A stretch of 64,000 bases of DNA. Origin: Anthoceros angustus (lineage: Eukaryota > Plantae > Anthocerotophyta). A model generated the notes under the pieces. It searched no databases, had not been told where the DNA came from, and saw only the letters and a program-made list of their open reading frames with translations. Every line of letters starts with the position of its first letter. The stretch's first letter is position 1. Location of the stretch: the NCBI GenBank assembly GCA_010909165.1, contig MU008183.1, forward strand, positions 496,001-560,000, read 5' to 3'. Positions 2,070-59,100 of this stretch are shown in pieces. The position numbers and the translations under genes were made by a program.

Positions 2070-2892
2070 GAATAGAATTATCTTCTATATTTTCTTCAGC
2101 CATTTCTGCATTATCGGGCATATTTCCAGCATTAGTATTAGCTAAAATATCCGTAAGTGCCCGTAATGCACGTAATGCTCGATACGGAGGTTCGTGACAC
2201 GGACGGAGCCCCACGCTCCGTGTAGATGAGCGACGGGAGGCACCGCCCAACCACATCTTCACCAAGGCTTCATCCCGGCCCAAGTTCCACATTATCCTGC
2301 TTCACCCGCTTTTCCATGTTATGTTTAACCCGCTCACTCACTGCGCCACCACTTGCTCGCACCGGATCGCCGCCAATCCATGATCGGGACCGCCACACCA
2401 TTTTCGAGGGCTGGCATGGCCAGCCGGAGGTGAGCTGAGCCCAGCGGAGCCTCGCATGGTCTGCCCCTCGGGGGATCGCGGCGCCCTCGCACTCCAATCC
2501 CCGCGCACGCCAAAGGAAGCATCAGCACGCTGCAATCCCTGTCAGCATTCTGTGTTCCTTCAGATTGAGAGCCCGGCTGCCTATGGGAAGGACGCAGGCC
2601 TTCTACAGGCCATCCCTGGCCATGGTCGACTCCCTGCCCGTGATTGTGATGCAGGTCTTGTCCTGCACGCACGGGAGCAGGGGGCAAATGTGGCCATGCT
2701 GCAATGTCTTGCAGCTCCTCCTCACCGTCTGCATAATCTGCTGGCGCATTGGCGAGGGGGTATAGGCCTATGTTGCGATGTCCTGGGTCACGGCTGTGAT
2801 CAATGTACGCAGGTTGAGAACCTGAGAACACTCCTGGAGTTGGCAGTTGAAAACCAGCATTGGGATCAGGAGGGTCGTCCTCATCATTATCG

Positions 2893-3960
2893 TCATCTGG
2901 GTATGTGTGTGAACTGCCATCTCCAAAGTTCACCGCGTGAACTGCCACCTCCAAAGTCCGGATTGCTCATAGTTGATTCTGTGAGGCCTCGACGGTTCCA
3001 TGTGTCAGAGACTCCCATCGCCTCCCATCGCCCGCTCAATGATGAGCTTGAAGACAACACTCCTGCATATGTCGGTTGGCGGGTGGAGGGTGAATACAGT
3101 CTATAACCCTTCACCTGATCTCCATAACCGACGAATATATGTTGGGTTGCCCTGTCAGCTAGCTTAGGCCTGCCCTGAAGGGGAACAAGGGCCCAAGCTG
3201 GACATCCAAAGACTCTGAGGTGTGCCACTCCATGTTTTCTCTTGTACCATAACTCGAATGGTGTTGTTCCTGACGATATGGCTGATGTGTGCATCTTGTT
3301 CATCGTAGGTGGTCAGGATCGCACTCACCCCAAGAGGGGCTTTGGAAGATTGGAGGCATGGAGCATCGCCCTGCAAAGACTTGCTATGTCCCCAATTTTC
3401 TTCCTGCCACCCCATTTGGGATGTGTAAGGTAAAGTGTATTGACGCATAATCCCTAGAGCCTTACACCAGTCCTTGAATTCATTTGAACTGAACTCTCCC
3501 CCGTTGTCTGTCCGCAAGCAGCGAACCTTGGACCCTGTCTGAGATTCAGCAATTATTTTATAGTCTTGGAAGGTACTGAATGCATCACTTTTCCTCTTCA
3601 GTGGATACGTGTGTGTGAACCTGCTGTAGTCATCAACAATGACCAGGTAATATAGTGCTCCACCAAGGGAGGGTACACTTAATGGCCCACATATATCTGC
3701 ATGCAGCAATTCTAACAAACTGGTTGCCCGTGTAGGGTTGGTGTTAGTGAAGGGTAGCTTCTTGTGCTTTCCCATGACACAAGCCTCACAAACTTGCATT
3801 GCTTTCCTAGTTTAGGAGTCCTTCACCGTTCTAAAATAATCAACCTGTGTGACGCAGGTTTAGGGAGATTCATGTGGCCAAACGCATGCCACAAGAGAGT
3901 TCTTGAGGAGATAGAGTTCCGCCACGCAAGCAACCCTACTTCCACTCGGCTGAGCTAATG
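2893..3960 (-). pseudogene. copia-1 integrase (frameshifted) with GAG-pre-integrase region
   Basis: LWHMRFGH, CEACVMGK, LLHADICGP, VDDYSR, LRTDNGGEF, HLRVFGCPAW. Confidence 0.9.
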
Positions 3961-6447: not shown

Positions 6448-6479
6448 AACAAGGTCTCCTAAGAAGTAGAGACGGCTCC
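6448..6479 (+). repeat. Left TIR of element A
   Basis: aacaaggtctcctaagaagtagagacggctcc is the reverse complement of 26487-26519 with a 1-nt gap. Confidence 0.9.
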
Positions 6480-7099: not shown

Positions 7100-7924
7100 G
7101 CTACAATTGCACCATGCTCCACAACGCGGAGATTTGGAATGGCCGCCTCAAGGATTTGGTTCACCATCATGTGTCCGCACGACAATGTGCCGCATATGGG
7201 TAAACAAGGAATGAGTAAAAGGATCACCGCAGCGGTGGTCATCCACCCGTTTCGATTTACCAATCACCGCTTTGATTGTCAATGAGCAAATGTTTCAAAG
7301 ATCCCTCGTGAAGAGTGCCAATGCTCAAACATGAATCTTTGGAGGGCTAGCAACAAGGGCCAGCGTGGATAGCAGACAGCGCAGACCGCTATCCGGTGTC
7401 GAGGTTGGTGCCGACATGTATGCCTCACTACAAGTCAAAGCACAACTGTTCTTCACGAGTCCAACAAGTAAAACGCAACTATGCTTGTCAATCGGGTCCT
7501 CCACGCACATCCCCACCAAACGATTCGATGCTAGATATTGTTTTCGCTGTCCACCCATGCGGGAGTCCACCGTGGATCATACTTCTCGGTCAACGACTCA
7601 ATGGGAGCCCGCTTTCCCCATCATCGTGCCCAAATGCGAGTGCCGCACCTGTGTCATCGCTCGCACGCGTCGCCCATGACGCCTCGCAGCTTTTCTCACC
7701 ATCCGCCAATGCACCGCACACATCTCCCACAACACCAAACATCGGGGCTCTATCACATCTCCGGATGTGGCTCTCTTGCCGAATGCACGCCGCCTTGAGC
7801 CACAAATCGCCGCCACCGCCGCTGAGTTCACCATCGGCTCTTTGCTAAACGCCTTGGGTCCCGTGATAGCCTTGATCTCTCCCACCTCCTCCTCCTCGCT
7901 CGGCCAAAGGCCCAAATTATTCAT
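7100..7924 (-). pseudogene. Possible degenerate SET-like domain at the C-terminus of the element A ParB-MTase gene
   Basis: Across frames: RAFGKRATSGDVIEPRCLVLWEMCGAL, TVDSRMGG, LALFTRDL and IPCLPICGTLSCGHMM resemble SET and post-SET motifs in the right order. Confidence 0.3.
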
Positions 7925-10900
7925 CGTAGATCCATGAACCGAATCGCCTGGGATCCACGTCTATTGAAATGACATCGCCTGCACTTGATAGCCGCAACCA
8001 TTCTCACCTAGCGCACACCCGCCTAAGACCCACTCGCCTTCCATATCAGTATAGCTCAATGAGCTTCTTCAACAACTGATGGGCTTTTGATATGGGCATA
8101 CCACCCTATCATCTGGCGTGTTATAACACGACTTATGTTCTTGCCTTCTCAAAAGCAAGATGTCAACCCTTTCCATCTTTCATAATACTGAAAGACCGAG
8201 AGAGAAATGTTGCGCCGACAATCCCGCTTGAGGGCGCCGCCCGTGGTGATGTAATCACCGCATCATACAACTTGTCCGCTCCAGCCACATTGGTTTTGTG
8301 CGGAAGCACGAATCGACACCTCCTTTACATGTTGCAAGCAATACATCCCGGACCATTGACATATCATCCGGCGAATGAAATACCACGATTCTAAATACCT
8401 CGACGCCAGATGCCTCGAACGCATGATGACGTTTTCAAACTCAAGGCGATTGAACGCGTGTCATACTCTCGAGTTAGCATCCACCCAACCCTCTTGGCAA
8501 GTCCAAGCAACATAGCATACGGTCGGGGTTCCACAAGCTGGGCCATCCTCACGATGTTCCCACATATTATGCCTACCTTTGGATCTCCGTGTCATACTCT
8601 CGAGTTAGCATCCAGACCCAACCCTCTTGGCAAGTCCAGAAGCAACATAGCATACGGTCGGGGTTCCACAAGCTGGGCCATCCTCACGATGTTCCCACAT
8701 ATTATGCCTACCTTCTTTGGATCTCCGGTGTCATCTCTCGAATGTCTTTAACTTGTCGGGACTTATGGTCTCCAACAACCGCGTTGCTCATCCTCCATTA
8801 TTTTCCATGCTTTGGCCTTCATAACGTGTTCCTTGAAATTGTCCGGGAGTGCACTCCACTCAAGACAAGCATTCGCCGCACAAAGGGCAAAGCACCATCA
8901 TAGACAAGAACATCGCGGCAAGTGAAGCAAGCCCAAAGCCACCAAGCGTTCATACACATGAAATGATCTCAAATGCACCGGCCGTCTGGTGTGGAACAGT
9001 CGTGCAAGCTGACCAGCTACTGACCATAGTTTTGAACGCTGGCTAGAAGTTGCTGATCTGCTCGACAGTACTATATTGAGGGTAGCGCTCCCTAACCTGC
9101 TCAAAGGTCTCACAGTTCAGGTTCTTTGCAAGTGTGACGTGGATGAGGTTCAATTTTTTGGCCTTCTCCAGCCACCCTTGCATTTGCCTCAAACTCATTT
9201 CTCCGCATGTAACCTTCATACATGCTTTTAAGGTTGTTGTTGCCCGCAGTGTAATGTTCGACACCGGAAACACTTCCACACTCTCACTCGCACATCCGCT
9301 TCTTTAACCTCAATGACCACAAGGTCTCTCACAGCTGTAGGTGTGTTCCGCGTCCTCCTCGTGGCCTTTGTCTGCTTTTGCTAAGGCGCATCCACTGCTC
9401 CAGAATCGCTTACATTCCCACTTCTCAAATATCTCGTCCACATACCTCCAGACTTCTTCATCAACTTTTGCCACACAATAGTCTGGTGTTCTGTTGTCCA
9501 CAAGCCTGTGATACCGCACTTGGGGCCATGCTTTGTTGCATCCCACTTTGGGATCCCGCCCAGCGCATACACATCCAGCTTCCGCCCACGCCGACTTCAA
9601 ACCTTTCGATCTCCTAGATAGCAACTCACTTCTAATGTAACGTACTCAGTCCATGAAAGTAAATGTCTTTCTTGCATCTGCGATCGTGTTGTGGTCCGTG
9701 GCTACAATCCTCATCTCGTCCTCTGTGAGTCCGGCTAGGACATATGCATCCATCCACTTGTACTCTTCCTTGGAGTGCGAGATGGGGCAGACGGACCTTG
9801 CTCGAAAGAATGATTACCCCAAGACGAAAAACCCGTACACCTTGGTCCACCTTCTCAACGCCGAAATTGCTTTTGTCGACACGTGAAGGATCGACTATCA
9901 CAACCATTGGTAGCACACCACCACCCAGGATGTGTTTCATCTTTTGCATCAAAGCCTCCACCCAAGCGAGATCCAGCTTCTCACCGCCGCCTCACAGTTC
10001 CTCGTGGTTTGCAACACTTGATTGGCAGCTTCAAAGTAGACTCCCAAACTCGTTTGATAGCAATACCATCCCTTTCGTCCGGTTTGCATCGCTCTTATTG
10101 CGAGCTGTCATCGTTAGTAGCGGCCGTGCATCCTTAGCTTTCTCCACAAACAGGCGGTTCATCCTCCTCTTCTTCTTCGTTCTCCTCCACAATTGCAGGC
10201 TTCCTTGTTTCCCTTTGATTTCTTGGCTTTCCCATTCTTTGTTGTGCACCACCCGCTCGAACTGCTTTTGCCAACAAAAGCTCCTCCTCTCTTCCTTCCC
10301 TTGGCGGACTTCACGGCGATGGGGACTCTGCTTACCCTTCTACGATCCAACACGCTCGTTAGACCTCCAGACTTCTTCATCAACTTTTGCCACAGAGTCC
10401 GGTTCTGTTGTCCACAAGCCCGTGATACTGCACCTTGGGGCCATGCTTTGTTGCATCCCACTTTGGGATCCCGCCCAGCGCATACACATCCAGCTTCCGC
10501 CCACGCCGACTTCAAACCTTTCGATCTCCTAGATAGCAACTCACTTCTAATGTAACGTACTCGGTCCATGAAAGTAAATGTCTTTCTTGCATCTGCGATC
10601 GTGTTGTGGTCCGTAGCTACAATCCTCATCTCGTCCTCTGTGAGTCCAGCTAGGACATATGCATCCATCCACTTGTACTCTTCCTTCAGTGGGTACAGAT
10701 GAGACAGACGGGACCTTGCCTGGAAAGAATGATTACCCCCCAAGACGAAAAACCTGTACACACCTTGGTCCACCTTCTCAACGTCGAAATTCGTTTTGTC
10801 AGCACACTGTGAAGGATCGACTATCACAACCATTGGCAGCACACCAGCCACCCAGGGACAGTGTTTCATCTTTTGCATCAAAGCCTCCACCCAAGCGAGA

Positions 10901-11568
10901 TCCAGTTTCCTCACCCTGGCTGCCTCACACAGTTCCTCTGGTGGTTTGCAACACTTGATTGGCAGCTTCAAAGTAGACTCCCAAACTCTTTTGATAGCAA
11001 TACCGTCCCTTTCTACGTCCCGGTTTGCATCTGCTCTTATTGCAGCGAGCCTGTCATCGTTAGTAGCGACCGCGCTGTCCTTAGCTTTCTCCACAAACAG
11101 GCGGTTCATCCTCCTCTTCTTCTTCGTTCTCCTCCACAATTGCAGCTTCCTTGTTTCCCTTTGATTTCTTGGCTTTCCCATTCTTTGTTGTGCACCACCC
11201 GCTCGAACTGCTTTTGCCAACAAAAGCTCCTCCTCTCTTCCTTCCTTCCCTTGGCACTTCGATGGGGACTCGCTTGTACCCTTCTACGATCCAACACAGC
11301 TCGTTAGACCTCTGTGAGCAATCACGGGATGGGGACAGAACCTCGAGATCGTCTTCTTTGCCGGCTGCCAAGCCTTCTCCTCTTAAATGCAGCCACCTTC
11401 TGCATCCTGATCGTCTTCCGACTCGTCCGGCAAAATACCATCCGGAAATGCCTCATTGTCCTCACCGTCGTCCCTGGTGTCCTCGTCGTACCCGGTTAGG
11501 CTTCCTTCCCTTTGCTGCGCGGATGAGTTATGCGCATGGGGGTCACCAAGTCCGCTGGCTCCGCTCAA
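7925..11568 (-). CDS. Element A ParB/Srx-domain + beta-class amino-DNA-methyltransferase fusion (frameshifted, partly duplicated)
   Basis: Acidic/basic N-terminus, then ParB-like VLPMVVIVDP...VLGGNHS...ATDHN (10159-11223). Then IICGNIVRMAQLVEPRPYAMLLLDLPRG (DLPRG at 8622-8636, duplicate at 8489-8503), VCPYQKP..LLKKLIELY (8050-8100), EGEWVLGGCA (8010-8040) and VISIDVDP (~7950-7975). Confidence 0.75.
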
Positions 11569-12645
11569 AACCCGGACGTCCGGTGCTGGTCGGGCACATC
11601 TGGGGCATCACCAGCTCGGGTGCGGACACGATGAGACGCAAATGCGTCGGGCTCACCGCCATGACCTACAGACCGATTAGCCAACGGCGAAACATTTGCA
11701 GAATCTTTATTCCTTGGATGCTTTCTAAGCAGTGGATTGCTGGGTTGTTTCTCAGCGTATGCACTGGTGGGTTGTTTCCCAATATTTGCACTCGTAGTAA
11801 GCATACCATCTTCTCCATTGCTGGGCTGCATCCTTGCAGATGCCCTTGTTGGTTGCTTCTCAGCAGCTGGTAATTGCTTCGTGGCAGATGAACTGGTGGG
11901 TTGCTTCGCACCGGCAGATGCATTTCTACCGGTACGGTCCACATGAGTATCCCGCCGTGGATGCACCCGGCCTTGGCCTTCCTGGGTGGCGACCGGAAGT
12001 CGAGCATGCTTTAGCTCCACTAACGGTTTGCCTCACTCCTTCTAAACAAATTTGGTGTATAACCTTGTGGAACACAATGTACCCATCATTGGCTCTCAAC
12101 CCCTGCAGCAGTTCCTCACGGACACCCTCCGGCTGGCAAGACACAGTGTCAAAAGTCTTGATCGCAGCTGAGTAGACGCGAACGACATTGGGGTCGTTTG
12201 GCGTGTCGTCTTGATGCAGGAAAATTACGTACCCACGGTCATTCTTCTCAACGAATCGCGTGAATGTAATCGCTCCGGACATGAAGACTTTGAATCGGAC
12301 CGTGGTGCACCCATAATGTACACATACACCAATTGGCGGCGGGGTTCGCACGATCCAGTCTTGTCCGAGATGTCGAACGGAGAGTGCTCCATAAACAACT
12401 TTCTGAACATATCGATTTCCGCTTCCTTGTAAGGACTTTGAAACGATGCTCTGGTTGGAGTTGATGTGGTGGGGCGGGGTCACTACTGTCGTGTTCTGCA
12501 TGCTGGGGGTCTTCGGGTCTGGACTCGTAGCAGTTTCCATCTGGGCCTGCGAATCAACGGCCTTACGCCGTGCCCGTTTTTTGTCCGCCGCTGGCACTCC
12601 TTCTCCATCAGGAGCATTGTTCCGCTTCTTCTTTAGAGGGGCCAT
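11565..12645 (-). CDS. Element A orphan gene X (basic NLS-like N-terminus, KQPT-repeat C-terminus)
   Basis: Starts MAPLKKKRNN...KKRARRK. The core PYKEAEIDMFRKLFMEHSPFDISDKTW...AN..LWV aligns with gene X of element B. Confidence 0.55.
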
Positions 12646-17040: not shown

Positions 17041-20000
17041 AACCCCGGACGTCCGGTGATGGCTTGCCCGTGTTACCGGGAGCAGAACCAGAGCACGACA
17101 TGGCCTTAGATGAAACGGACCTGCAGGGTGATACATCGGACGTGGCCGCAAGCGATGGAGATTTGCTCTTGTTTGATCCTGGATGGACACCAGAACGGGC
17201 CAGGCGGGATCAAGAAGAAATCGCGGCCCATGTGGACCGGGTGGCCCGCGCCCGGCGCCGTCATCTGGAGAGGCCTCGATATCCACATCCTGACGACGCA
17301 ATCTGGGCCCGCCTCGGCCTGCCCCGCATGTACCCGGGTTTGTTCAAGTCACCAGGAGCGAAGAAATTGGCCAGGATGTTCTGTTCGATCCAAGTCCGCG
17401 GTCGAAGCGGATTTCTCCGGGGCGCCCAGCTGGAGACAAGGTGGCGCCAACAACAAACCCATTTTGTGCGTCGCAGGAGTACTATCAACCATGCGTCACA
17501 CCAGGAACCACTCATGAGAACAGCACGGATTCTGAATCAGAGAGTATTGCTGAGTCTCCGGATTGTGGTGAGATTGTGCATGAGATCGTGGATTTTGGAT
17601 TGCAATATGCACTGGTGGGTCATGAAGGCACTAGTAGAGGAAGGACACAGAGATCACATCTGGTACGCGACCCAATTGCACTGTTCGGAGATGTGAAATC
17701 ACCTGACCACAGGTTACATTTGCGAAATGCTGCCTCCTGCTAATCCTAAGTCTAAAGGGCTGGAGTTGCATTCCGTGGCAGGGCAGGTGTGTTCCACCAA
17801 GAACCGCGCAGCAAGAGTTAAGCTGGATCACGTTCTGACGAAGCACTGTAATCGGACGAAGCTATGTGCAGACCTGAGAAGGCAGTGCTGCGGGAAAAAG
17901 TGCTTAGGCCGGCTGGGAAGTGGCAAACTCAAGTCGATCCGTGTGTCCTTTTTTTCCATGACGCAAGGGGAGCAGGAACAGCATTTACAAGACCTTATTG
18001 ATATGGTGGAGGACGAGGAAACGGGTGTGGTGACCGGATGGGTGAACAAGGTACCACATGGGAAGGTTCCGATATGTGTCGGCATTCACGGTGTTGCATT
18101 GGAGCAACTGTGATCGAATGCTCAAACCCGAGTACAAAAGGGAACCAGGTTTGCTGCTGAGGCAAGGCTTGGAAGAATCCCAACTTCATATGGTCTACAA
18201 GCTATGATGTGGATGGATACATTTTTCAAAGGAAATGTGGAGAGACTACCCAACAGAGAAGTATTCAATCTGACTGATACATTCACAAAGGAGGAGATTT
18301 TCATAGAGTATGCGAGAAGCTAGAACAATTACCACACATGTATGTTACTATTTCATGGCGATCGCCACTTTCGGTCGGTGAAGAATCCACGATGCAACCG
18401 TTTTTCAATATGTGCTGACTGTGAGGGGAGCAAGGTGAAGGCCGTGCATCCATCTTAGATATGTGGTTAAACAACGAGATGTCCGGTGATTGGCAGCTGT
18501 CCTTTATGGGCAACCCAAAAGCCCGTTTTAGGGTTTTGTACAAATATTTGCTCTTCCTGCAGTCCCAAGGAACGTTTGCCTTCGACCCCGGACTTGTACT
18601 CATGGTGCGCCTCGTCTTGTATGTGCAGACAGACACCGAGAGCTCCTTAATTACCACCGCGATCAACAACAGAAGGAGCGGGCGAAGATGGCGAAGCATC
18701 GCGGCAAGTGTATGGCTCAACCGACCAAGTACATTGGAATGGCGATAGATGGTATGGATCAAAAACCGAGTTGCCTCATTTCCGTAGAGTGCCCAAGGAT
18801 GTCGAATCGCCCTTGTCTCTTCATGTGCTTGGGGTTTTGGTGTTTAGCAAATACATGCGGACTTCTGTGTACCTAAGCTTCCCCAATATTTGGAATGATC
18901 CCAACGGGACAATAGCTGTGGTCCAGCATGTTATTAACAATTGGGAAGGCCACTTGCCTAAAATTCTATACCTCCAGATGGACAATACTGCGGCCCAGAA
19001 TAAGAATCAAGAGGTGTTGGCGTAGTGCGATGTTAGTGTCCAAGGGTATTTTCAAGAAGGTTAAAGTGGGCTTTTTAATTGTTGGCCATACCCATGATCA
19101 GATTGATCAAATGTTCTCCCGTTTTTCTGTTGTGCTGAATCTAAAGGAGGCCTACACCTTGCCAGAGCTGATCGCTTGCCTGCAGAGAGCGTATACTCCA
19201 TCACCGAATGTCTTCCTCATGAAGGAAGTGCCAGACTTCAAGAAATATCTGTGGCCACCTGGTGGTCCCTCAGCAACATTCAGACTGCACAATCACAGCT
19301 TTCAACATCAGTTTAAGATAACTCGAGAAGAGTTGCCTAGTCACGAGTATGTTACAGTGTTGAGGTGCAAGCAATTTTCCACAGCTGGACCCCAGATGGT
19401 GGTGTGCATGCTATGGATGGAGTACCAGAGGGAGATTGTGGCGTGAGCTGGTGCCATTGCATGTGAGGCGAAAGGCAAAGGGCAAAAGGAACATGCGGAT
19501 GCCTCGCATGTCAGCGGGAGTGGAGGACAATAGGCAGCGTTTAAAAACGTCGACAGATGTTTTTAATGATCAACAACTCTGTTGGTGGGAAGCTTTCTGG
19601 GAGGAGCAACTAGCAATAGCGGGTGTGGTAGCCTCTGGTGCTCTCCCTCCACTGGAAACTGCATGGACATGGTATAATAGAGGAGAGCAGCACCCACAGC
19701 CCGAACCAAGATCCAGATGAAGTGGTAGTAGATGCTGCATTAGCAAGACGCATATTCGGACAAGAGCGAGAGATTTACAGTGCACAGGACTCGCTAGACG
19801 ACAACGTCTGGAACAACAGCACACAGGGTCTATTGCAGAGATTGAAGCAGGCATGATGCTTGCGGTACAGGCAGCGGATGACCCGGAGGGCCGTCCTTTC
19901 TGGCTGGGTAAGGTTGTGGCGGTTGACCATGATGGTGTTGAACCGATAGCACAAGTGCATTGGTGGCGGACTGAAAACCAAAATGCACTGGACGGAAGGT

Positions 20001-20150
20001 ACTCGGAAGAGTGGGTGCCATGCACTAGCGGCCGGAGGAAAGGAGGCGGCGGAACCCTTTGAAGAGGCATGTGCAACCCATCAATCTAATGGAGACAACA
20101 ATTATGGGTTATGATTTTGAGCTAACGAGCAGGACTTTGAGCAAAGACAC
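16832..20150 (+). CDS. Element A transposase (DDD/E, DUF7869/Sola-like), copy 1, frameshifted, with an intron at ~18435-18628
   Basis: MANDLSAEEEFF start, CCGKKCL motif, CxxC. YIGMAIDGMDQK, LYLQMDNTAAQNKN and VGFLIVGHTHDQIDQMFS supply the putative catalytic Asp residues. C-terminal RPFWLGKV...VHWW. Confidence 0.8.
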
Positions 20151-20154
20151 AAGG

Positions 20155-22300
20155 AAATGTGGAGAGACTACCCAATGTAGAAGTATTCAATCACTGATAC
20201 ATTCACAAAGGAGGAGATTTTCATAGAGTATGCATAAAGCTAGAACAATTACCACACATGTATGTTACTATTTCGCAAGTGGATACGCCACTTCGGTCGG
20301 TGAAGATTCCACGATGCAACTGCTTTTCAATATGTGTGAGAAACCAAGCGAAAATAAAAATGCGGGAACGGGAGCAAGGTGAAGGCCGTGCATCCATCTT
20401 AGATATGTGGTTAAACAACGGATGTCCGGTGATTGGCAGTCCTTTATGGGCAACCCAAAGCCCGTTTTAGGGTTTTGTACAAATATTTGCTCTTCCTGCG
20501 GTCCCAAGGAACGTTTGCCTTGACCCGGACTTGTACTCATGGTGCGCCTGCCTTGTATGTGCAGACCGAGAGCTCCTTAATTACCACCGCGATCAACAAC
20601 AAGGAGCGAAGATGGCGAAGCATCGCAAGTGTATGGCTCAACCGACCAAGTACATTGGAATGGCGATAGATGGTATGGATCAAAAACCGAGTTGCCTCAT
20701 TTCCGTAGAGTGCCCAAGGATGTCGATAATGCAGCCCTTGTCTCTTCATGTGCTTGGGGTTTTGGTGTTTAGCAAATACATGCGGACTTGTACCTAAGCT
20801 TCCCCAATATTCTAATGATCCCAACGGGACAATAGTGTGGTCCAGCATGTTATTAACAATTGGGAAGGCCACTTGCCTAAAATTCTATACCTCCGGATGG
20901 ACAATCTGCCCGTAATAAGAATCAAGAGGTGTTGACAGCGATGTTAGTGTCCAAGGGTATTTTCAAGAAGGTTAAAGTGGGCTTTTAATTGTTGGCCATA
21001 CCCATGATCGATTGATCAAATGTTCTCCGCTTTTCACAGTCAATCTAAAGGAGGCCTACACCTTGCGAGCCGATCGCTTGCCCGCAGAGAGCGTATACTC
21101 CATCACCGAATGTCTTCCTCATGAAGGAAGTGCCGACTTCAAGAAATATCTGGCCACCGGTGGTCCTCATATTCGCACAATCACTTTCAACATCGCTTTA
21201 AGATAACTCGAGAAGAGTTGCCTAGTCACGAGTATGTTACAGTGTTGAGGTGCAAGCAATTTTCCACAGCCGCACACTGGACCCCGGATGGTGGTGTGCA
21301 CTGCTATGGATGGAGTACCGAGAGGGAGATTGTGGCGTGAGCTGGTGCCATTGCATGTGAGGCGAAAGGCAAAGGGCAAAAGGAACATGCGATCCGCCTG
21401 CATGTCAGCGGGAGTGGAGGACAATAGGCAGCGTTTAAAAACGCCGATGATGTTTTAATGATCAACAACTCGTTGGTGGGAAGCTCGGGAGGAGCAACTA
21501 GCAATAGCGGGTGTGGTAGCCTGCGGTGCTCTCCCTCCACTGGAAACTGCATGGACATGGTATAATAGAGGAGAGCAGCACCCACAGCCCGAACCAGAAG
21601 ATCCAGATGAAGTGGTAGTAGATGCTGCATTAGCAAGACGCATATTCGGACAAGAGCGAGAGATTTACACAGGTGCACACAGGACTACTGCTAGACGACA
21701 ACGTCTGGAACAACAGCACAGAGGGTCTATTGCAGAGATTGAAGCAGGCATGATGCTTGCGGTACAGGCAGCGGATGACCCGGAGGGCCGTCCTTTCTGG
21801 CTGGGTAAGGTTGTGGCGGTTGACCATGATGGTGTTGAACCGATAGCACAAGTGCATTGGTGGCGGACTGAAAACCAAAATGCACTGGACGGAAGGTACT
21901 CGGAAGAGTGGGTGCCATGCACCCCAACAGCAAGCCGGAGGAAAGGGAGATGGCGGAACCCTTTGAAGAGGCATGTGCAACCCATCAATCTAATGGAGAC
22001 AACAATTGTGGTTTATGATTTTGAGCTAACGAGGAACAGGACTTTGAGCAAAGACACAGTGGAAATGTTGAAGAGAAAGATCTTTGAGCTCGAGGAGCCA
22101 AGTGAGGAACACGCTTTGCTTCCTCCGATTGATCTGCAGAAGTGGTGACGAACGGATTGATTCCGATGATCTCGACAATGTTGAATCTTCGATGCATCCG
22201 TTGATTATTTGGTGGACTTGCTTGAAGGTGTGGACTCGTGAGGAGCCGGATCGCAACCCACCGATTCTAAATTTTGAGGTTGGCCAGATAGAATCATGAA
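20155..22300 (+). repeat. Second copy of the element A transposase core and C-terminus (ORF end 22148)
   Basis: Near-identical to 18220-20150 with scattered 1-nt indels. ORF 21513-22148 gives the intact C-terminus. Confidence 0.85.
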
Positions 22301-22369
22301 GTCTCGAGACTTAGCAAGGATGTAACCAAAGGTTTTTGTCCGGTTGAAGGTGCACCGGACGTGCGGGTT

Positions 22370-24330
22370 TTTGTCCGGTTGATCTTTGGACGGATGTCCG
22401 GTGATTGGCAGTCCTTTATGGGCAACCCAAAGCCCGTTTTAGGGTTTTGTACAAATATTTGCTCTTCCTGCATCCCAAGGAACGCTTTGACCCGGACTTG
22501 TACTCATGGTGCGCCTGCCTTGTATGTGCGCATGACACCGAGAGCTCCTTAATTACCACCGCGATCAACAATGAAGGAGCGAAGATGGCAAGCATCGCGG
22601 CAAGTGTATGGCTCAACCGACCAAGTACATTGGAATGGCGATAGATGGTATGGATCAAAAACCGAGTTGCCTCATTTCCGTAGAGTGCCCAAGGATGTCG
22701 ATAATGCAGCCCTTGTCTCTGTTCATGTGCTTGGGGTTTTGGTGTTTAGCAAATACATGCGGACTTCTGTGTACCTAAGCTTCCCCAATATTTGGAATGA
22801 TCCCAACGGGACAATAGCTGTGGTCCAGCATGTTATTAACAATTGGGAAGGCCACTTGCCTAAAATTCTATACCTCCAGATGGACAATACTGCGGCCCAG
22901 AATAAGAATCAAGAGGTGTTGGCGACAGCGATGTTAGTGTCCAAGGGTATTTTCAAGAAGGTTAAAGTGGGCTTTTAATTGTTGGCCATACCCATGATCG
23001 ATTGATCAAATGTTCTCCGTTTTCATTGTCTGAATCTAAAGGAGGCCTACACCTTGCGAGCTGATCGCTTGCCCGCAGAGCGTATACTCCATCACCGAAT
23101 GTCTTCCTCGTGAAGGAAGTGCCAGACTTCAAGAAATATCTGGCCACCGGTGGTCCCTCAACATTCAGCACAATCACTTTCAACATCGTTTAAGATAACT
23201 CGAGAAGAGTTGCCTAGTCACGAGTATGTTACGTGTTGAGGTGCAAGCAATTTTCCACACCTGGACCCCGGATGGTGGTGTGCACTGCGGGATGGAGTAC
23301 CAGAGGGAGATTGTGGCGTGAGCTGGTGCCATTGCATGTGAGGCGAAAGGCAAAGGGCAAAAGGAACATGCGACCGCCTCGTTGTCGCGGAGTGGAGGAC
23401 AATAGGCAGCGTTTAAAAACGCCGATGATGTTTTAATGATCAACAACTCTGGTGGGAAGCTCGGGAGGAGCAACTAGCAATAGCGGGTGTGGTAGCCTCG
23501 GTGCTCTCCCTCCACCGGAAACCGCATGGACATGGTATAATAGAGGAGAGCAGCACCCAGCCCGAACCAAGATCCGGATGAAGTGGTAGTAGATGCATTA
23601 GCAAGGCGCATATTCGGACAAGAGCGAGAGATTTACAGTGCACAGGACTCGCTAGACGACAACGTCGGAACAACAAGACAGGGTCTATTGCGAGATTGAA
23701 GCGGGCATGATGCTTGCGAGGTTGCAGTGCAGCGGATGACCGGAGGCCGTCCTTTGGCTGGGTAAGGTTGTGGCGGTTGACCATGATGGTGTTGAACTGA
23801 TAGCACAAGTGCATTGGTGGCGGTGAAAACCAAAATGCACCGGACGGAAGGTACTCGGAAGAGTGGGTGCCATGCACTAGCGGCCGGAGGAAAGGAGGCG
23901 GCGGAACCCTTTGAAGAGGCATGTGCAACCCATCAATCTAATGGAGACAACAATTATGGGTTATGATTTTGAGCTAACGAGCAGGACTTTGAGCAAAGAC
24001 ACAATGGAAATGTTGAAGAGAAAGATCTTTGAGCTCGAGGAGCCAAGTGAGGAACACGCTTTGCTTCCTCCGATTGATCTGCAGAAGTGGTGACGAACGG
24101 ATTGATTCCGATGATCTCGACAATGTTGAATCTTTTGATGCATCCGTTGATTATTTGGTGGACTTGCTTGAAGGTGTGGACTCGGTGAGGAGCCGGATCG
24201 CAACCCACCGATTCTAAATTTTGAGGTTGGCCAGATAGAATCATGAAGTCTCGAGACTTAGCAAGGATGTAACCAAAGGTTTTTGTCCGGGGTTGAAGGT
24301 GCACTGGACGTGCGGGTTTTTGTCTGGTTG
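22370..24330 (+). repeat. Third copy of the element A transposase core and C-terminus
   Basis: The DGMDQK, MDNTAAQNKN, GHTHD and ...PPIDLQKW segments are repeated again. Confidence 0.85.
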
Positions 24331-26486
24331 ATCTTTGGACGGATGTCCGGTTGTTTGTTGGTTCTCAATGTATGGAAGGCATGATTCCTGTTCACCGGTA
24401 TAGCTTGTTTGGCAGTTGATGGGAACGGGGAACCACGATCGGGGTTGAAGCAGAAACCACGATCGAGTTCGGGCCAGCAGTTTGGATGCAGAGGGGAGCT
24501 GGTGTGAAGGGAGGTTGATTAAACCCCAAACCGAAGCATGGTTCTGTCCCCTTACTCTCCTCCTACTCTCCAATTACTTCCCATGTTCCTGTCCACCTTT
24601 ACGGCCGGTTTATGCTTGAGTGTGAAACCCTGTTGCCTCCGGTGCGCGTTTCTACTGGAGGTGAGGCGGTTGCTGGGTAATAAATCCAGGAAGGGGCTTC
24701 TTCGCGAGCAAGTGACGGTGTTGCGCAAGGGGCTGACAGCAAGACGACTGGTGGTGCAAGGCACGCTTTCTTTTCCTGGAATCCAGGTGAGTGCATGGGA
24801 GTTGCACACATGGCATGTTGCAATTGCCTTTTCCTCCACTACTTTGCTTGTCTACTCGAGTTGGCCATCCTAGTTGCTATTGGTAGCCGGGCCCGTCTTT
24901 GGCGAGTTATGGCGGAGGTGTCTTCTTGAGCCCACTATCACCGCAGGCGAGGCATGTGCGCTATCGTGCTTTTCGTGTGTTGGTGTTCGTGCTTGCGAGG
25001 TTGCACCGTGAATAATGAGGACGAGGAGTGGTTCAGATACGGTCCTGGTAGGCGGATATCCAGGCAAAGAGGGCCAGGAGGAGGTCCTCGACGCAGGTGC
25101 GGCGTGTGTTGGCAAGAGGGGAGGAATCCTCCGTTGGAGGAAACCACCTTTCGTGGCACCGTTTTCATCCGCCGCTTGGTTTTCAAGGGAGGTGGGGATC
25201 CGAGTTCTTGTCGCGAGCACAGAGTGGACACCTCCTGAGAACCCGACAGATGAGGAACCGCGAGATATCTCTCGTGTCCCATGATGGTCGGGAGGAGCCG
25301 TGGCGGCGAGAGGAGCCTTCGCGGCAGCCCTACCTCGCGATGAAGGCTGAAAATCGGAGCTTTCCCGAGGAGAAGGAGGCCAAGATGCGTGTGGTGCGGC
25401 GGCGGCGAGGAGCTGGCCCTTGTGATGGCAGCAGCAGAAACTGCTGCCAAAGCACTGGCAGCAGTGGAAGGAGCTTCCGTGAAGACTGAGCCACAGTGAT
25501 CATGTGCCACACAGGCATGCTGCAATTTTTTCCTCCTCTGGATGCCTTTGTATGCTTGCGCCATTGGTCTTGTGTATGATGTGCTGACAAGTGCATTGGT
25601 GTATGCAGATCAGTGTGTTCAGGACGGGGAGGTGTACAGCGTAGATTAGGATTTTCGGATAAGTTTTGGGTAGGCACATGAGACATTTTAAAGCTTTCCT
25701 TTTGTTCACATAGGAACTTTCTTAGTTATGTGGGACTGAGTTGAGGGTGAGCTCAAGGAGCTCCATGGACGGTTATGTTCACGTCTCTCGGATTGTGTGT
25801 GAGGTTAAGCTTGGGATGTTTGGATCACCATGCATTCGATACTTGTCTGTCATGGGGAATTAGACGGGTTGCTTATCAGACAGATCGTGAAGCAGCGTGA
25901 GCAGCGGTTTACAAGTGGATAAGTAAGCCTTTCTGGAAGGCAAGAGGAGGGTCGTGGCGCCGGACGTCCGGTGCCAGCGATTCAGAAAGCGGATATTACT
26001 TCCTTGCTCCTTGCGTTTTCTATTCCATACGATTCGAGTGTGTACAAGTGGATATGTTGGTTTGAAATTACTAGGATATTTATACTCAGTTAGTCGGTTC
26101 CTTGGAACACGATTTTTCTAAATAGCATTGGCGGTATGTCGACTTGCCTAAACCGATGTATAAAATAGCCTTCATCATTATTGTTGGTCAAGGGGGGTTT
26201 GGAGCAGGCATATATTGATTACTAACGGTACAAATGTGTCGATTAAAATAAATTGCCCGATGTGGCTGGATTTCGTTAAAAACAAAAAGGCTTTTTTCAA
26301 CCAGTTCAATCCCAAGGAGCTTGACAGGTCCATTGGCATGAGGAACCAAGAAAGGTGCTTTTCACAAAGGTGGGCCCATCGAAGAGTGTGTTTTTGGGTC
26401 TTGTTTGGGTGCAAACCCTTAAAAGAGGGTTCCGTTTTCATTTTAGAGGTCACAGTTGGCCTAAACGACCTCGGTCTCTAAAAAGT

Positions 26487-26519
26487 GGAGCCTGTCTCTA
26501 CTTCTTAGGAGACCTTGTT
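26487..26519 (-). repeat. Right TIR of element A
   Basis: ggagcctgtctctacttcttaggagaccttgtt followed by the TSD tctc. Confidence 0.9.
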
Positions 26520-29151: not shown

Positions 29152-29242
29152 TTTGGATTTAAAATCTCACATGATCTTACTTACATATATAGGCTACAAA
29201 AGTTAAATATCCCGATAATTTCTCTTAATATCTCGAGGTGCC

Positions 29243-30130: not shown

Positions 30131-30251
30131 AGGCCCTTGAATGCCATCTCTGCAACAACGCAACTGGAGTTCTCTCTTGCAAACATCCTAGCAGCTTGCT
30201 GAATCCTAGCTGCAGCGCTCTGTCCAGGTTTGGTTGTGGGCGGATCCAGAA

Positions 30252-48899: not shown

Positions 48900-51800
48900 T
48901 GGCTTGGTTGTCGGTTCTTCCTCATCACTGGGAAAACCTCATGCCCTTATCCGATCAATGAAAATGGTGCTTCTTTGCTCGGTCGATGGCGATGCAATTG
49001 CGGCCTTCCAATAATCTTTGCCAATATACGCCGCTCCGAGCACCCATCTATTACCCACTCCCTCTCTCCGTGAAAAGGTCATAGCGGAACCATAAGCCCT
49101 ATTGGTTTACGGTAAGGGTTTACAACATGTCCATCGTTTGACACATTCAAAAGTTTCTTCACGACGTGTCTAATGAAAGCGGGCATGGCTCAATCTCCCG
49201 ATGCCTTTGTTGCACGCATTTCCTCATATCTTGACGGTAGGGTGGACACCATACCCTCTTGTAAAATATTCACAATTCTCATATAGACCTTCATCGCAAT
49301 TAAATTATCTTTCTCCCACACCATGGTATAAACACCCCACAAGACACCATTTACGCGGCGCATTCGACGTCACGCATCGATCCGGACCATGCATAAATAC
49401 CACTCGAAAGGTTTTGCAGACCGTTACCGTCATGAACCCATCCATGATTTTTTCATAATCTTCGGATGTCATCTCCTCGATCCGTGATTCGACACATTCC
49501 CTCTTGGCAAATCAACAACCAGCTTTGTATTCCGCTTTCCAAGATAGCCGCCATTTCGCGAATATCACCGATAATTACTTGGTACGACTTTTCTGTTTGC
49601 TTTTTGGGACTTGGGCGTGGATAGTTTAGCATCATTGTCCTCCTCTGCTAATTCTCTCGAAGGTCTTCCACCCTCTTCCGGTTCCTTCTTTGCGTTGATA
49701 TGCTCTTTGAAGCTATCTCGAATGACTTTTCTTTGTACTCTTACACTGCTTCAAAAGTGCGAGTACCAAAAAGCATTGTGAAACTTGACAATGATGGGGA
49801 TGCGCAAACAAGTGCGCGCACCTAATCCATAGTACCCGATAGCGAGAATAACTTACGATGTGGTCGAAAACCGGTTGAAACTTTGCGATATCATCCGTGG
49901 TCAGTCGTGGGTACTCTCTCTCAACCTCGCAAATGACGACACCGTAAACCCGAGCTTTGTATCACATTTAACTTTTTGCCTTTATGATCCACGTCTTCAT
50001 GCCGCTCACGCTTAACTCTCCACGAATTACTTTCTCCGGTCGAGAGCATAATCCGTTCGCCTCTCCGAGGCATTCTCGAACACCCACTTGATTCGTCGCA
50101 TGCATTGGCTTTACAATAAGATTCGGATCTCGCTTCGTTCAGTTCGGGCACGCGTTTGATTTCCTCTTTGCTGCCTTTTTGCGGTTTCCTGCTCTGCTTC
50201 TTTCTCCCACACCATGGTATAAACACCCCACAAGACACCATTTACGCGGCGCATTCGACGTCCCGCATCCGATCCGGACCATGCATGAATACCACTCAAA
50301 GGTTTTGCGGTTCATCATGAACCCATCCATGATTTTTTCATAATCTTCGGATGTCATCTCCTGATCCCAGGATTCGACACATTCCCTCTTGGCAAATCAA
50401 CAACCAGCAGTTTGTATTCCCGCTTTCCAAGATAGCCGGCCATTTCGCGAATATCACCAGTAATTACTTGGTACCTGACTTTCTGTTTGCTTTTTGGGAC
50501 TTGGAACGTGGATAGTTTAGCATCATTGTCCTCCTCTGCTAATTCTCTCTGAAGGTCTTCCACCCTCTTCCGGTTCCTTCTTTGCGTTGATATGCTCTTT
50601 GAAGCTATCTCGAATGACTTTTCTTTGTACTCTTACGCTTCAAAGTCTGCGAGTACCAAAAAGCATTGTGAAATTTGACAATGATGGGGATGCGCAAACA
50701 AGTGCGCACCTAATCCATAATGCCGATAGCGAGAATAACTTACGATGTGGTCGAAAACCGGTTGAAACTTTGCGATATCATCCGCCGAAAGTGCCGTGGG
50801 TACTCTCTCAACCTCTCGCAAATGACGACACCGTAAACCCGAAGTCGTTTGTATCACATTTAACTTTTTGCCTTTATGATCCACGTCTTCATGCCGCTCA
50901 CGCTTAACTCTCCGAATTACTTTCTCCGGTCGAGAGCATAATCCGTTCGCCACCTCTCCGGAGGCATTCTCGAACACCCGCCATTCGTGCATTGGCTTTA
51001 CAATAAGATTCGGATCTCGTGATTCGAGTTCGAGGCACGTTTGGATTTCCTCTTTGCTGCCTTTTTGCCTTTCCTAGCTCACCTTTCTCCCAAAGGTCGA
51101 ATACTTCATCCACCCTATCCCAGACATGCGCCGGGACACTCGCAATGCAGAGCACAGCAGTTTTCTGGTCTACCAACCGCTGCATATCTTCACGGTCTGC
51201 GGCATCCCCGATCACGCCGAGCATCCTGTACAGATTGTATTTCCAGTCCATAGTAATGTTAACGCCATCCGCAGCCGCAATCTTCATCTCATCGTGGATG
51301 TATCGAACTTGCTCGATGAAAGACATCCGTTTCCTGAAATCGGCCTTTACATTGTGATCCGTTGCCAAACATCTCATCTCGGCTTGCGTCAACCCGGCAT
51401 AGATATGGGCTTCCATATATTGGTAGTGCGAATTCTCCGGGTCCTCGGCATATAGTCTCTGGAAAGCATAGAAGCTGTGATTTCCTCCTAAGACTCCCAT
51501 AGTGTATTGTTGTTTCTTCAGCTTATCCTTATCGTAGTCGTCGACTGTTGGGCACTCTCTTGGGTCTATCATACAAAGCAGGGGAAGTACTCCTTCTTGC
51601 ACTGGTCCCTTTTTTATTTCTCGGAGAAGATGTTTTCCCCAAGACTCATCTACTCTTCTGATTTGAGCATCTCGGGTTAAATAATCAGCGCTTCTCAGCT
51701 TGGTGATGGCAACCATGTCCGTGTGAGGGATGCATCTCTTCTTGTGTCTTGACTCCGGTTGGTTGAGAGGATCCCTTACTGCGCTCCACTCTATCGTTAT

Positions 51801-52418
51801 ACATCATCGCTTTTGTAATCACTCGCCCGATTGCGGACTATTGTCCTCGTCGGTATCGTAGCCCTCTTCACGCTTTTGCCCTTGCCTTTCTTTTCACAGT
51901 AGTGTCGAACAATTTCCTGAAGATCCTCCTCTGTGTCCTCGTCTTGGGTTACATTCGCCTTTCTTCGCCTTCTTCTCTTTCGTGATATATCCCTTTGCTC
52001 TTTCGCCTTGGATACAGCGGATGTTTTCTAGACTCTTCAATATTTGTTCTGCTGATGGCAAGAACAACTGATTTTTGGATGCATTTGAGGACCGTTTGGA
52101 TAGTCCCTCACTTTGGGTCTCCTCATTCCTATTCATCTCAGCTTGGGCGTTCAAACCCACGGCTTCAACATCCGCCTCCTCATCGTCTGCTCCCTCCTCT
52201 TCGCGATCCCCACTATCTGCTTCATCCTCAACCTCTCTATCCAGTGGCGCTTCATACCTTTCGGTATCTTGGTCCATGGAGTCTTCGTCGGATAGTTCTT
52301 CCTCCATAGCTGCAGACGACGGCGGCTTAGCAGATGTTGCAAATTGCAGCCGTCTTCCTTCCGCTGCCTTCTCCACAATAGGTTGACCACCCACAGCTTC
52401 GTCGGCCATCTTTGTCAT
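48900..52418 (-). CDS. Element B ParB/Srx + beta-class amino-DNA-methyltransferase fusion (frameshifted; ~49300-50050 duplicated at ~50200-50950)
   Basis: Acidic N-terminus MTKMADE...; ParB-like VLPLLCMIDP..VLGGNHS..ATDHN (50904-51716). YQVITGDIREMAGYLGKREYKLLVVDLPRG (DLPRG at 50384-50398 and 49499-49513), VVNPYRKPIGLM (~49095-49125), EWVIDGCSG (49034-49060) and GRNCIAID (48982-49005). Confidence 0.78.
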
Positions 52419-56142: not shown

Positions 56143-59100
56143 ATGCAGAGCCCTTCGAAACATATGGCAAAATCGGGGGGGAAGCGGCATGGCATTCGGT
56201 TGCGGGCGACGCGGAATGTAGAAGACAGTTGCAGGAGCGGTTTCAAATCGCCTCGGGAGAGTGGGCATCGAGACATCGCGCACAGGTTCGCTGTTATGGA
56301 TACGACGCCTGATGCTTCTATTCCAAAACGGGTAATGGTCATGGATACGACTCCATTAGAGAATGACGGAAGTTCTTCTTTCCCAAGGCCTAATCTTTTT
56401 GACAGCATACCGGAACAAGGAAGTGGCCAGGACGTGGATCTCGCAGCCAGAGAAGATGCTCTCAAACGGCGCCGGCTATTCTCTGATGCGACAGACGAAG
56501 ACGTTTCCACTGTTCCATCGGAAGATTGCGACATCATTGACGGTGGTTTTGGAGGACTTCGAGCAAACTTCAATCCCAAAGCTTTGTCGGAGACTTTCGT
56601 GCAGGCCAGCCCTCAAAAACGTCGGCAATATCCCAGCAGACGGTGGAAGCGTGCGCAAAGGTTGTGTTCTACTGAGCAAGTTCAGAGTGCATGGTCGTCG
56701 CATTGTTGTAGCAAAGGATGTTTGCTGAAAGTTGGAAGGAAACATATAGAAAACCTCAGGTATCGCTTCTTGGGAATGGGTCGAGAAACAGAGGCGTATT
56801 TGGAAAGTCTGCTTGAGGCAGTCCAAGTCGATCTCGACACAACAAAGGTGATCAACTACCTTCCGGAGACCGAGAACGCAATGTTGTGTTCGAAGTTTTC
56901 GCAAGGTGTTCTGCATTGGATGGAGAAGGTATCACGATCTGACGAACAGGGTTCTCCGGAACACACCATGGTCATCAGAAATGAAGGTCCAAGCCCGTCC
57001 AAAGCAAGACCATGTGCTAGAATGCATTGCTTGGATGGACCAATTTTTTAAGATAACTGCAGAGCGCATGCCAAACGTTGCAGTGTTCAACCTGCCTGAC
57101 TCCTATACGAAGGGCGAGATCTTCCAAGACTACAAACGGGAGGTGGCACGGGCAGGGATGTCAAACGTATCTCACTCTCATTTTTGCGCATTATGGAAGA
57201 TGCACTTCCCGAATGTCAAGATCCCAAAGTGCAGCCGCTTTTCCAAATGTGTACAGTGTGAAACTATCAAGACGGCCATTGATTCTGACGGATCGGCGAG
57301 ACCAAGGTAGGTCAAGTGCGCGCAAGTGCGCGCAAGTGCGCGCAAGTGCGCGCAAGTGCGCGCAAGTGCGCGCACTTGCGGGCCGCGGAGGAGTGCGCGC
57401 AAGTGCGCGCGCAAGTGCGCGCAAGTGCGCGCGCAAGTGCGCGCAAGTGCGCGCGCGCAAGTGCGCGCAAGTGCGAGCAAGTGCGCGCCAGTGCGCGCGC
57501 AAGTGCGCGCAAGTGCGCGCAAGTGCGCGCAAGTGCGCGCAAGTGCGCGCAAGTGCGCGCGCGCGCGCGCGCGCAAGTGCGCGCAAGTGCGCGCCCCTCC
57601 TTGCGAAAGTGGGAGCCCTATCTGCGCGCACTTATTCTCCCGCTATGCAATATACGAATCTCACATCTTCATGGTTTCTTTGGCAGAACGTTTGGAGAGC
57701 GAACTGCGGTCGCACAGAGTTCAGTTAAAACAAGAGCGACTGAAGCTAGCGAAGCATCGGCTGAAGTGCGCGGGACAACCCAGCCGATATATTGGAATTG
57801 CTATAGATGGTATGGACCAGAGCAAGACCGAGCTCCCGCACTTCACAGGGCCTCCAAAAGATTTCGCCGATGGGTTAATTCGTGTTCATGTTGTTGGTTG
57901 TTTGGTATACAATAATGTGATGAAGACGAAGGTGTATGTCAACTATCCGAACATCCGCAATGATGCCAACCTGACGATACATATTATTCAAGATATTATA
58001 CTCAACTATGACGGTGTCTTGCCAAAGACACTTTACCTTCAATTGGACAACACCGCGAGAGAACAAGAATATCTTTGTTGTTTGCATATCGAGTATCTTT
58101 GGTGAAGAAGCGGGTATTCGAGAAGGTTAAAGTTGGATTCCTTCTTGTCGGGCACACCCATGATTCAGTGGATCAAATGTTCTCTTGTTTTTCAAAAAGT
58201 CTAAGACATAAGAAGGCAATGTCGCTACCAACTCTGATGACGCTTATTGAACAAGCGTATACCCCAAATCCAGAAGTGAAAGTGATTACCGGTGTTGCGG
58301 ATTTCCGAAGGTATGTATGGCCTTCTGGGATGGGTAAAAGGGGGGCACGGGATGCTGCAGTTGGACGTTTGAACAACCATAGTTATCAACATCAATTTAA
58401 AATCACGAGGAAGAACGCGCAGGCGGGGCCATGGTTGTAGTGCTTCGCGGCAAATATTTATCAACCACACCTCACTGGGAACCCGACGAGGGACTTGAGT
58501 TTCTTCGCCTCATCCCGAAACCCCATCTGGGGCACCTCTGTGCACTACAAGTACATGGGAAAGCTCCAGATCCCAACCCTCATAGATCATTGGATGGCAT
58601 CAGGAAGGCACTCGAAGAGCCGATGCAGAAATACCTTACCAGTGCCGACAAGATATGGTGGAACGGCTTTTGGGAGTCACAAGCGCTGATTTGTACAAAA
58701 ATCTCCAGTGGCGTCGACCATGAGCTAGAGATACCATGGCAGTGGTACAATCGGGTAGAGGCTGAGCGAAATAGCGATACCATCCTTGTGCCGGATGTTC
58801 TGCTTCTCTCGGGTCCAGTAGCAAGGACCGTAGGGCCAAGGCAAATGTACCTTGGTAATTATATCCCGAAGGCAGCAAGGGCAAGGGAAAGTGCACGGTT
58901 AGACGGAGATGTGACTGAGATCCAGCGTGGCCATATGATTGCCGTTGCATGTGAGGCGGATGACCAAAACAGGCCTTTTTGGGTTGCAGAGGTGGAGAAC
59001 CTAGATTTCGACTGTGACGAACCGTACCTAGTCGTGCAATGGTGGGTTACGAGAACAAGAATGCATTTGAAGGCCGATATATACCAAGAGATTTTGCCAC

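Follow-up and report, generated by a model that had tools for sequence, protein, structure and literature searches.

A probable transposon-borne ParB-methyltransferase gene, non-functional or mis-assembled, in the genome of Anthoceros angustus

We analysed a stretch of 64,000 nucleotides from Anthoceros angustus (Anthocerotophyta; GenBank assembly GCA_010909165.1, contig MU008183.1, positions 496,001 to 560,000 of the forward strand), here called the window, in which a sequence-only reading had proposed that a transposon, element A, carries a fusion of a ParB/sulfiredoxin-like domain with a DNA methyltransferase. We conclude that the minus strand between window positions 7870 and 11280 very probably holds a non-functional or mis-assembled accessory gene of a cut-and-paste DNA transposon with a DUF7869 transposase, putatively Sola1-like. 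In intact relatives such a gene is a single intronless open reading frame (ORF) of ∼700-980 codons, transcribed divergently from the transposase gene, and the predicted protein combines a domain of ParB/sulfiredoxin fold, carrying the motif GG(N/Q)H(S/T), with a helical middle domain and the fold of a beta-class S-adenosylmethionine (SAM)-dependent DNA amino-methyltransferase. The gene is homologous to intact relatives and collinear with them, both folds are found in one of these relatives, and the pairing with a transposase recurs. The proposal is partly supported: it was right in kind, with novelty and function both overstated.

The element A gene (∼7870 to 11280) extends slightly beyond the limits of the earlier claim (7925-11568). 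Every motif string quoted in that claim was recovered on the minus strand where it had been placed (Table 1), and the motif order IV...X-I-II, which had been taken to indicate a beta-class enzyme, was borne out, since DLPRG, CPYQKP, EGEWVLGGCA and DVISIDVDP follow one another on this strand at collinear positions of a family hidden Markov model (HMM). Threading the ∼130 bp from CPYQKP to DVISIDVDP involves three frames and four frame changes, and by themselves the strings are therefore weak proof. Profiles built from outside sequences were searched against 2,679-3,206 window pieces. With an HMM of the methyltransferase half, made from outside relatives only, the top nine matches among 2,679 stop-to-stop pieces were all collinear minus-strand pieces of element A or of element B, a second, diverged copy in the window; a full-length family HMM, from which window rows were excluded, retraced the same collinear minus-strand path in both elements. 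Convincing profile matches in the window ran from 11217 to 8075 along element A and from 51755 to 49091 along element B, and occurred nowhere else.

Individual relatives gave the same picture. The nearest of them outside the window, Logan contig L004, aligned to window positions 8425-7874 (E 3.7e-18) and reads SPYQKP...EWVVDGCCGSGSG unbroken where element A has the threaded CPYQKP...EGEWVLGGCA; likewise the SAM loop of motif I, scrambled by frame changes in element A (EGEWVLGGCALGENGCG), is intact in L004 (DGCCGSGSG). The protein of metagenome contig L002 maps collinearly onto elements A and B, its residues 17-248 aligning to 10507..11280 of element A (E 1e-18), and the Logan protein P0003 aligns to the middle region of element A over 289 amino acids (42% identity, E 1.8e-54). 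Since profiles built only from outside sequences select pieces of both elements on the expected strand and in the expected order, the motifs of element A are genuine family homology and not the product of chance.

A search of 1.84 billion representative sequences with a profile of the ParB-like domain yielded 243 proteins, of which the long matches carry the N6_N4_Mtase domain (PF01555) above the curated cut-off. Intact relatives are single ORFs of ∼700-980 amino acids, with CPYQKP or NPYQKP followed ∼23 residues on by (V/I)(L/V)DxxSGSG. Named hosts are Chara braunii (many paralogues), the liverwort Riccia sorocarpa, the fern Adiantum nelumboides, Ginkgo biloba and two marine invertebrates, Ptychodera flava and Holothuria leucospilota, the remaining relatives coming from metagenomes or Logan contigs; with this spread of hosts, the gene is not a unique rarity. 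The nearest relatives of element A share just 42-52% identity with it. The Pfam check proposed for the fusion succeeded for relatives P0002, P0015, P0020 and P0040, all above the curated cut-off for PF01555, and failed for the window itself (see below). The Riccia protein, P0040, belongs to the family although the half with motif IV is missing from it, and TSPPY is absent. Word-indexed searches returned zero homologues for the 354-amino-acid ORF of element A and only the query itself for P0131.

The L002 protein, P0015, was modelled with AlphaFold from a 35-row family alignment, giving a mean predicted local distance difference test score (pLDDT) of 79.5. The Rossmann-type methyltransferase fold on which the sequence-only reading depended was found in this intact relative (Foldseek E 9e-12; VIA-align Z 22 to M.BceJIV and CcrM). 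Residues 520-770 matched beta-class methyltransferases with Z of 22.1 (M.BceJIV), 21.9 (CcrM), 20.4 (MboIIA), 19.0 (RsrI), 18.8 (PvuII) and 18.2 (bdelloid N4CMT), so that, as modelled, this half has the beta-class amino-methyltransferase fold. Comparison of the family profile with the PDB gave M.BceJIV (8urk), M.RsrI, DpnA, MboIIA and CcrM at E 4e-13 to 3e-7 and PvuII at only 0.3; no ParB chain was matched. The ParB/sulfiredoxin fold accounted for most of the non-methyltransferase matches over residues 90-240, with Z of 8.9 with the ParB N-terminal domain of pNOB8, 8.7 with PadC, 8.1 with KorB, 7.3 with a serine kinase, 6.8 and 5.9 with sulfiredoxins and 5.1 with Spo0J; on this model the ParB-like part has a ParB/sulfiredoxin fold. 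The nucleotide-binding motif is GERRxR in ParB and GGCHR in sulfiredoxin. No arginine-rich motif of this kind is present in the family, which has GG(N/Q)H(S/T) instead, elements A and B both reading GGNHS with no arginine. The ParB ORF of the window itself, modelled from a three-row alignment, reached a pLDDT of 40 and was unusable.

The claim that the gene belongs to a cut-and-paste DNA transposon held. The ParB-methyltransferase gene lies 6-7 kb from a gene for a DUF7869 DDE/DDD transposase, and the head-to-head pairing of the two occurs in five independent cases, namely elements A and B and the metagenome contigs L002, L006 and L008. L002 (8,915 bp) consists essentially of a single intact element with 44-nucleotide terminal inverted repeats (TIRs) at its ends, its flanks being too short for a target site duplication (TSD). 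One of its strands encodes a 580-amino-acid DUF7869 transposase and a 385-amino-acid ORF, the other a 243-amino-acid ORF and an uninterrupted ParB-methyltransferase ORF of 789 amino acids; L006 and L008 have the same divergent layout. The transposase and the 385-amino-acid ORF of L002 map onto the transposase region of element A, where the transposase is present as three tandem, indel-ridden copies.

In element B, the ParB ORF (50907-51716, elsewhere delimited as 50907-51803) is 39% identical to the N-terminal/ParB ORF of element A (E 1e-32) and is followed downstream by VVDLPRG, NPYRKP, EREWVIDGC and GRNCIAIDRA. This copy is broken much as element A is, and DLPRG occurs twice because of a tandem duplication of its own (49308-50209 versus 50199-51092). 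Comparison of the two elements by tblastx revealed a common plus-strand gene (18195-20020 in A, 57017-59099 in B), and the plus-strand transposase genes of both carry DGMDQ, LQxDN and GHTHD motifs. Both elements are embedded among Ty1/copia elements.

Table 1. Features of elements A and B in the window. A motif string given with a single coordinate is placed by its high end on the minus strand.
Feature	Element	Position	Strand	Evidence or remark
N-terminal region and ParB/sulfiredoxin-like domain, upstream tandem copy	A	10507..11280	-	Single frame; family HMM 17-242, E 1.5e-63
Downstream copy of 0.92-kb tandem duplication	A	9444..10367	-	Partner 10363-11312, 91% identity; self-BLAST
End of ParB domain and helical middle domain	A	9016..9831	-	HMM 182-394; one frame with stops
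In-frame stops in helical-middle part	A	9646-9648, 9310-9312, 9304-9306	-	
Beta-class amino-methyltransferase-like half, fragmented	A	7870..8900	-	At least 7 frame changes, several stops; profiles and L004
∼135-bp tandem duplication repeating motif IV	A	8457..8741	-	8457-8603 versus 8588-8741, 94% identity
GGNHS	A	10726-10740	-	ParB/sulfiredoxin-like domain
GNIVRMAQL	A	8696 and 8561	-	
LLLDLPRG	A	8645	-	
DLPRG	A	8622-8636; duplicate 8489-8503	-	Motif IV
CPYQKP	A	8081-8098	-	
LLKKLIELY	A	8075	-	
EGEWVLGGCA	A	8012-8041	-	Motif I remnant
AAIK	A	7995	-	
DVISIDVDP	A	7950-7976	-	Motif II remnant
Full-length HMM path	A	11217-10507, 9774-9412, 9240-9046, 8852-8790, 8726-8610, 8401-8273, 8134-8075	-	
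Full-length HMM path	B	51755-51051, 50563-50372, 49484-49380, 49165-49091	-	
ParB-methyltransferase gene, second diverged copy	B	48950..51803	-	Profile path, motif series
Transposase gene (DUF7869), divergent from ParB-methyltransferase gene	A	17841..24351	+	PF25273, E 1.3e-27
Transposase region (DUF7869), divergent from ParB-methyltransferase gene	B	56771..59099	+	PF25273, E 6.6e-13
Tandem-duplication sets		3761-6192, 9444-11312, 12170-17093, 18229-24351, 45747-47593, 49308-51092		

As assembled, the element A copy cannot encode a full-length protein, because its frame changes at least seven times, several in-frame stops interrupt it and it contains two internal tandem duplications. The ParB-like ORF is at 10159-11223 (minus strand; GGNHS at 10740). 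The N-terminal region and the ParB/sulfiredoxin-like domain lie in the upstream copy of a 0.92-kb duplication, in the downstream copy of which the ParB part is spread over three frames (HMM matches 10073-9649); the duplicates differ by 32 indel events and 25 substitutions. A second duplication, of ∼135 bp, accounts for an extra ∼128 bp between positions 35 and 60 of the methyltransferase HMM. With both duplications subtracted the gene would comprise ∼760 codons, comparable to the 789 of L002, and the spacing of the profile matches leaves no room for introns. The idea that the ParB-like and methyltransferase parts form one intronless gene on the minus strand is supported by relatives and profiles; the element A copy itself is not a working gene as assembled.

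It is possible, though on balance we doubt it, that the plant itself carries an intact gene and that the frameshifts, stops and duplications are artefacts of assembly, for example of unpolished long-read patches joined by overlap. The window contains six sets of tandem duplications in unrelated elements, copia included, with periods of ∼0.9-2 kb and 86-93% identity (Table 1), and in all seven tandem-copy pairs from these six loci small indels (32-65 events) outnumber substitutions (19-43). An excess of 1-3 bp indels over substitutions is characteristic of errors in long reads and not of evolutionary change, and this ratio, the opposite of that in normal divergence, is seen inside copia elements and transposase genes as well. 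Clean and broken stretches also alternate (10507-11217 in one frame; 9649-10073 in three), and although one DNA run contains 71% of the words sampled from 28000-37999, neither it nor any other run is listed for the element A stretch, where listing requires at least 1/20 of the words. A 236-nucleotide short-read contig, probably from the source sample, differs from 8675-8897 by two substitutions and three indels; this contig may however derive from another copy of the family, and no contig spans the gene. Moreover, a stop and a frameshift also interrupt the ParB-methyltransferase gene of L004, a relative on a short-read contig, demonstrating that real decay occurs in the family, and some in-frame stops, for instance at 9646-9648 where TGA replaces CGA, resemble ordinary CpG decay. 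Tandem duplications riddled with indels abound in the window and would break ORFs throughout it, so that accurate reads are needed before its broken ORFs are given a biological meaning.

Far less probable is that the gene is not transposon cargo at all, being either a domesticated host gene, comparable to bdelloid N4CMT or to DN4MT1 of Marchantia, or a contaminant from a bacterium or phage. The methyltransferase fold does resemble that of N4CMT (Z 18.2), and there are weak matches to phage methyltransferases, but the latter are limited to the methyltransferase half, at 24-29% identity, and DN4MT1 has TSPPY where the element A gene has DLPRG (bioRxiv 10.1101/2021.02.12.428880). In addition, the gene shares its divergent layout with elements B, L002, L006 and L008, at 6-7 kb from a DUF7869 transposase, is broken, lies among copia elements and has many paralogues in Chara. 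Least credible of all is a chance origin of the methyltransferase motifs by frame hopping downstream of a real ParB-like ORF, which might be entertained given four frame changes in 130 bp and the blindness of Pfam to the pieces, but which we reject because outside-built profiles selected these pieces, collinear and in the correct order and strand, from 2,679-3,206 candidates in two elements without detectable DNA similarity here, and because of the alignment with L004.

A number of observations weigh against identifying the gene as the accessory gene of a DUF7869 transposon. The Z scores for the ParB fold (5-9) fall in the range that the alignment tool calls middling, and the fold evidence comes from P0015, a relative only ∼30% identical to the window protein. 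Pfam gave no match in the window ParB ORFs or in ten methyltransferase pieces (28-92 amino acids), nor did the ParB N-terminal model PF02195 match the ORF of A or B at E up to 1. At 7601-10362 the short-read and RNA contigs were only tiny and diverged, providing no frame correction and no sight of a transcript. For element A, the search for a TIR and TSD yielded only the candidate 26-nucleotide repeat described below, with no 4-bp flank match, no TSD and no second copy for comparison, and the 10 kb around one of the Chara copies contain no transposase.

In canonical beta-class enzymes the fourth residue of motif IV is aromatic and stacks on the flipped base. The canonical pattern (D/S/N)PP(Y/F/W) is not found in element A, element B or L004, all of which read DLPRG (twice in each element and once in L004); its presence in all three indicates that the motif is real and conserved in this sub-lineage. 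Elsewhere in the family, motif IV is DIPHG in Ginkgo, DAPYG in Adiantum, DFPYG or DLPYG in Chara, DPPYG in several metagenome members and of DVPN or DMPQ type in the invertebrates. The proteins from the hemichordate P. flava (P0085) and the sea cucumber H. leucospilota (P0101/P0160) keep the QKP motif and a G(S/T)G SAM loop alongside this degenerate motif IV (VDVPN, LDMPQ). Because DLPRG lacks the base-stacking aromatic residue, standard catalysis is doubtful for the sub-lineage that comprises elements A and B and L004, as is the earlier suggestion that the element marks itself or its targets with N4-methylcytosine (4mC) or N6-methyladenine (6mA). To judge from the motif, weak or altered catalysis with binding of SAM and DNA is more likely in this branch than a standard 6mA/4mC enzyme. 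We think it unlikely, if worth stating, that the streptophyte branch has kept a non-canonical motif IV (DLPRG, and DIPHG in Ginkgo) under selection and so supplied land plants with a new DNA-modifying or SAM-sensing self-marker, or with a source pool for host genes of unusual plant DNA methylation.

If the accessory-gene reading is right, the ParB-like part may direct the protein to repeats within the element that encodes it, where the methyltransferase part would mark or bind the element's DNA. Such a mark could tie transposition to replication, in the way known from Dam methylation of IS10 and Tn5, or could shield the element. Transposons with their own DNA-modifying enzyme could thereby write epigenetic marks on themselves, which bears on the timing of mobile-element movement, on escape from silencing and on the origin of the rare eukaryotic 4mC and 6mA enzymes.

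Further features were noted around the genes of both elements. Directly upstream of the ParB gene of element A, five or more imperfect direct repeats of 27 bp (unit similar to TGGTGGGTTGTTTC...CA; 11709-11910) form an array that could consist of binding sites or be a coding repeat; on the minus strand it corresponds to a nine-residue KQPT-type repeat inside the ORF of an orphan gene, 'gene X' (12034-13811). L004 has a homologue of gene X (3-1296, E 1e-6 to 4e-8) directly upstream of its ParB-methyltransferase gene on the same strand, and by this arrangement gene X may be an N-terminal extension of the ParB-methyltransferase gene and not a separate gene; the 243-amino-acid ORF of L002 has no similarity to it. 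Element A is bracketed by a perfect 26-nucleotide inverted repeat, unique in the window, with arms at 6448-6473 and 26494-26519, 20 kb apart, which we regard as a candidate TIR. Sola1, in the 2009 work of Bao et al., is said to have a 4-bp TSD.

Element B has a 1.8-kb block of 74% G+C (54000-55800) between its divergent genes, consisting of short repeats rich in palindromic CCATGG/GGCGCC, together with (GCGCGCAAGT)n-like arrays; 52546-52914 and 57318-57594 are recorded with this block. By analogy, the repeat blocks may be counterparts of the inverted-repeat arrays that lie beside algal ParB cargo genes. In L002, palindromic units (core GACCGATAGCGATATACG and its complement) at 2254-2373, 3613-3642 and 5660-5940 are concentrated close to the transposase ORFs and immediately upstream of where the ParB-methyltransferase ORF starts; they may serve as binding or target sites. 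Among words sampled from window positions 28000-37999, ∼14% occur in DNA runs of three other organisms and 25% in an RNA-type run of the source sample, which marks a conserved, possibly expressed segment within this interval.

The family can be compared with several known systems. With the solved beta-class methyltransferases (M.BceJIV, CcrM, M.RsrI, M.MboIIA, M1.HpyAVI, M.PvuII and bdelloid N4CMT) it has in common the fold, the order IV...X-I-II, (C/N/S)PYQKP and the GSG SAM loop, whereas most streptophyte members have D(L/F/I)P(R/H/Y)G and only some DPPYG. The ParB_N + N6_N4_Mtase proteins of phages and prophages (PF02195 + PF01555) resemble it in domain order and beta-class motif order, and predicted structures align across both domains; they are however prokaryotic and not found on DDE transposons, BLAST similarity is confined to the methyltransferase half, and the family described here has an additional helical middle domain of ∼250 amino acids. 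Further eukaryotic methyltransferases derived from phage ParB loci have been described by Iyer et al. (PMC4738411). Marchantia DN4MT1a/b are likewise prokaryotic-type beta-class amino-methyltransferases of the plant lineage, but they belong to the host, are expressed, read TSPPY and have been proven to make 4mC (bioRxiv 10.1101/2021.02.12.428880). Membership of the DN4MT1 or N4CMT groups was considered and not adopted, just class and fold being held in common.

Cargo genes of algal transposons offer further parallels. In Bostrychia moritziana, the Plavaka genes PAG2 and PAG3 encode ParB-2-oxoglutarate (2OG) oxygenase and N6A-methylase-SET fusions, with inverted-repeat arrays beside the ParB gene (bioRxiv 10.1101/2025.02.11.637652). 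Here too transposon cargo combines a ParB-like or N6-adenine methylase domain with a domain that modifies DNA or chromatin, although ParB is joined to the 2OG oxygenase and the methylase to SET, and the transposon superfamily is a different one. Sola1-1_Ec32 of Ectocarpus, published in 2025, carries a ParB-methyltransferase accessory gene opposite a Sola1 transposase, and its authors propose that the accessory protein binds and modifies its own element (Genome Biol, PMC12477816); related cargo genes are reported for green and red algae (PMC12477816; bioRxiv 10.1101/2025.02.11.637652). Sola1-1_Ec32 is likewise a large cut-and-paste transposon in which accessory gene and transposase lie on opposite strands, the layout of A, B, L002, L006 and L008, but has a brown-alga host, a protein of 1104 amino acids and a length of 21.5 kb, whereas the window lineage has DLPRG. 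No Ectocarpus protein was among the family matches inspected, and the likeness is one of architecture. The pairing of ParB-methyltransferase and transposase is therefore already published for algae; what is new here is the range of hosts in the plant lineage and the conservation of the DLPRG variant, and the element A copy, dead or mis-assembled, still contributes a plant-lineage record and this odd conserved motif.

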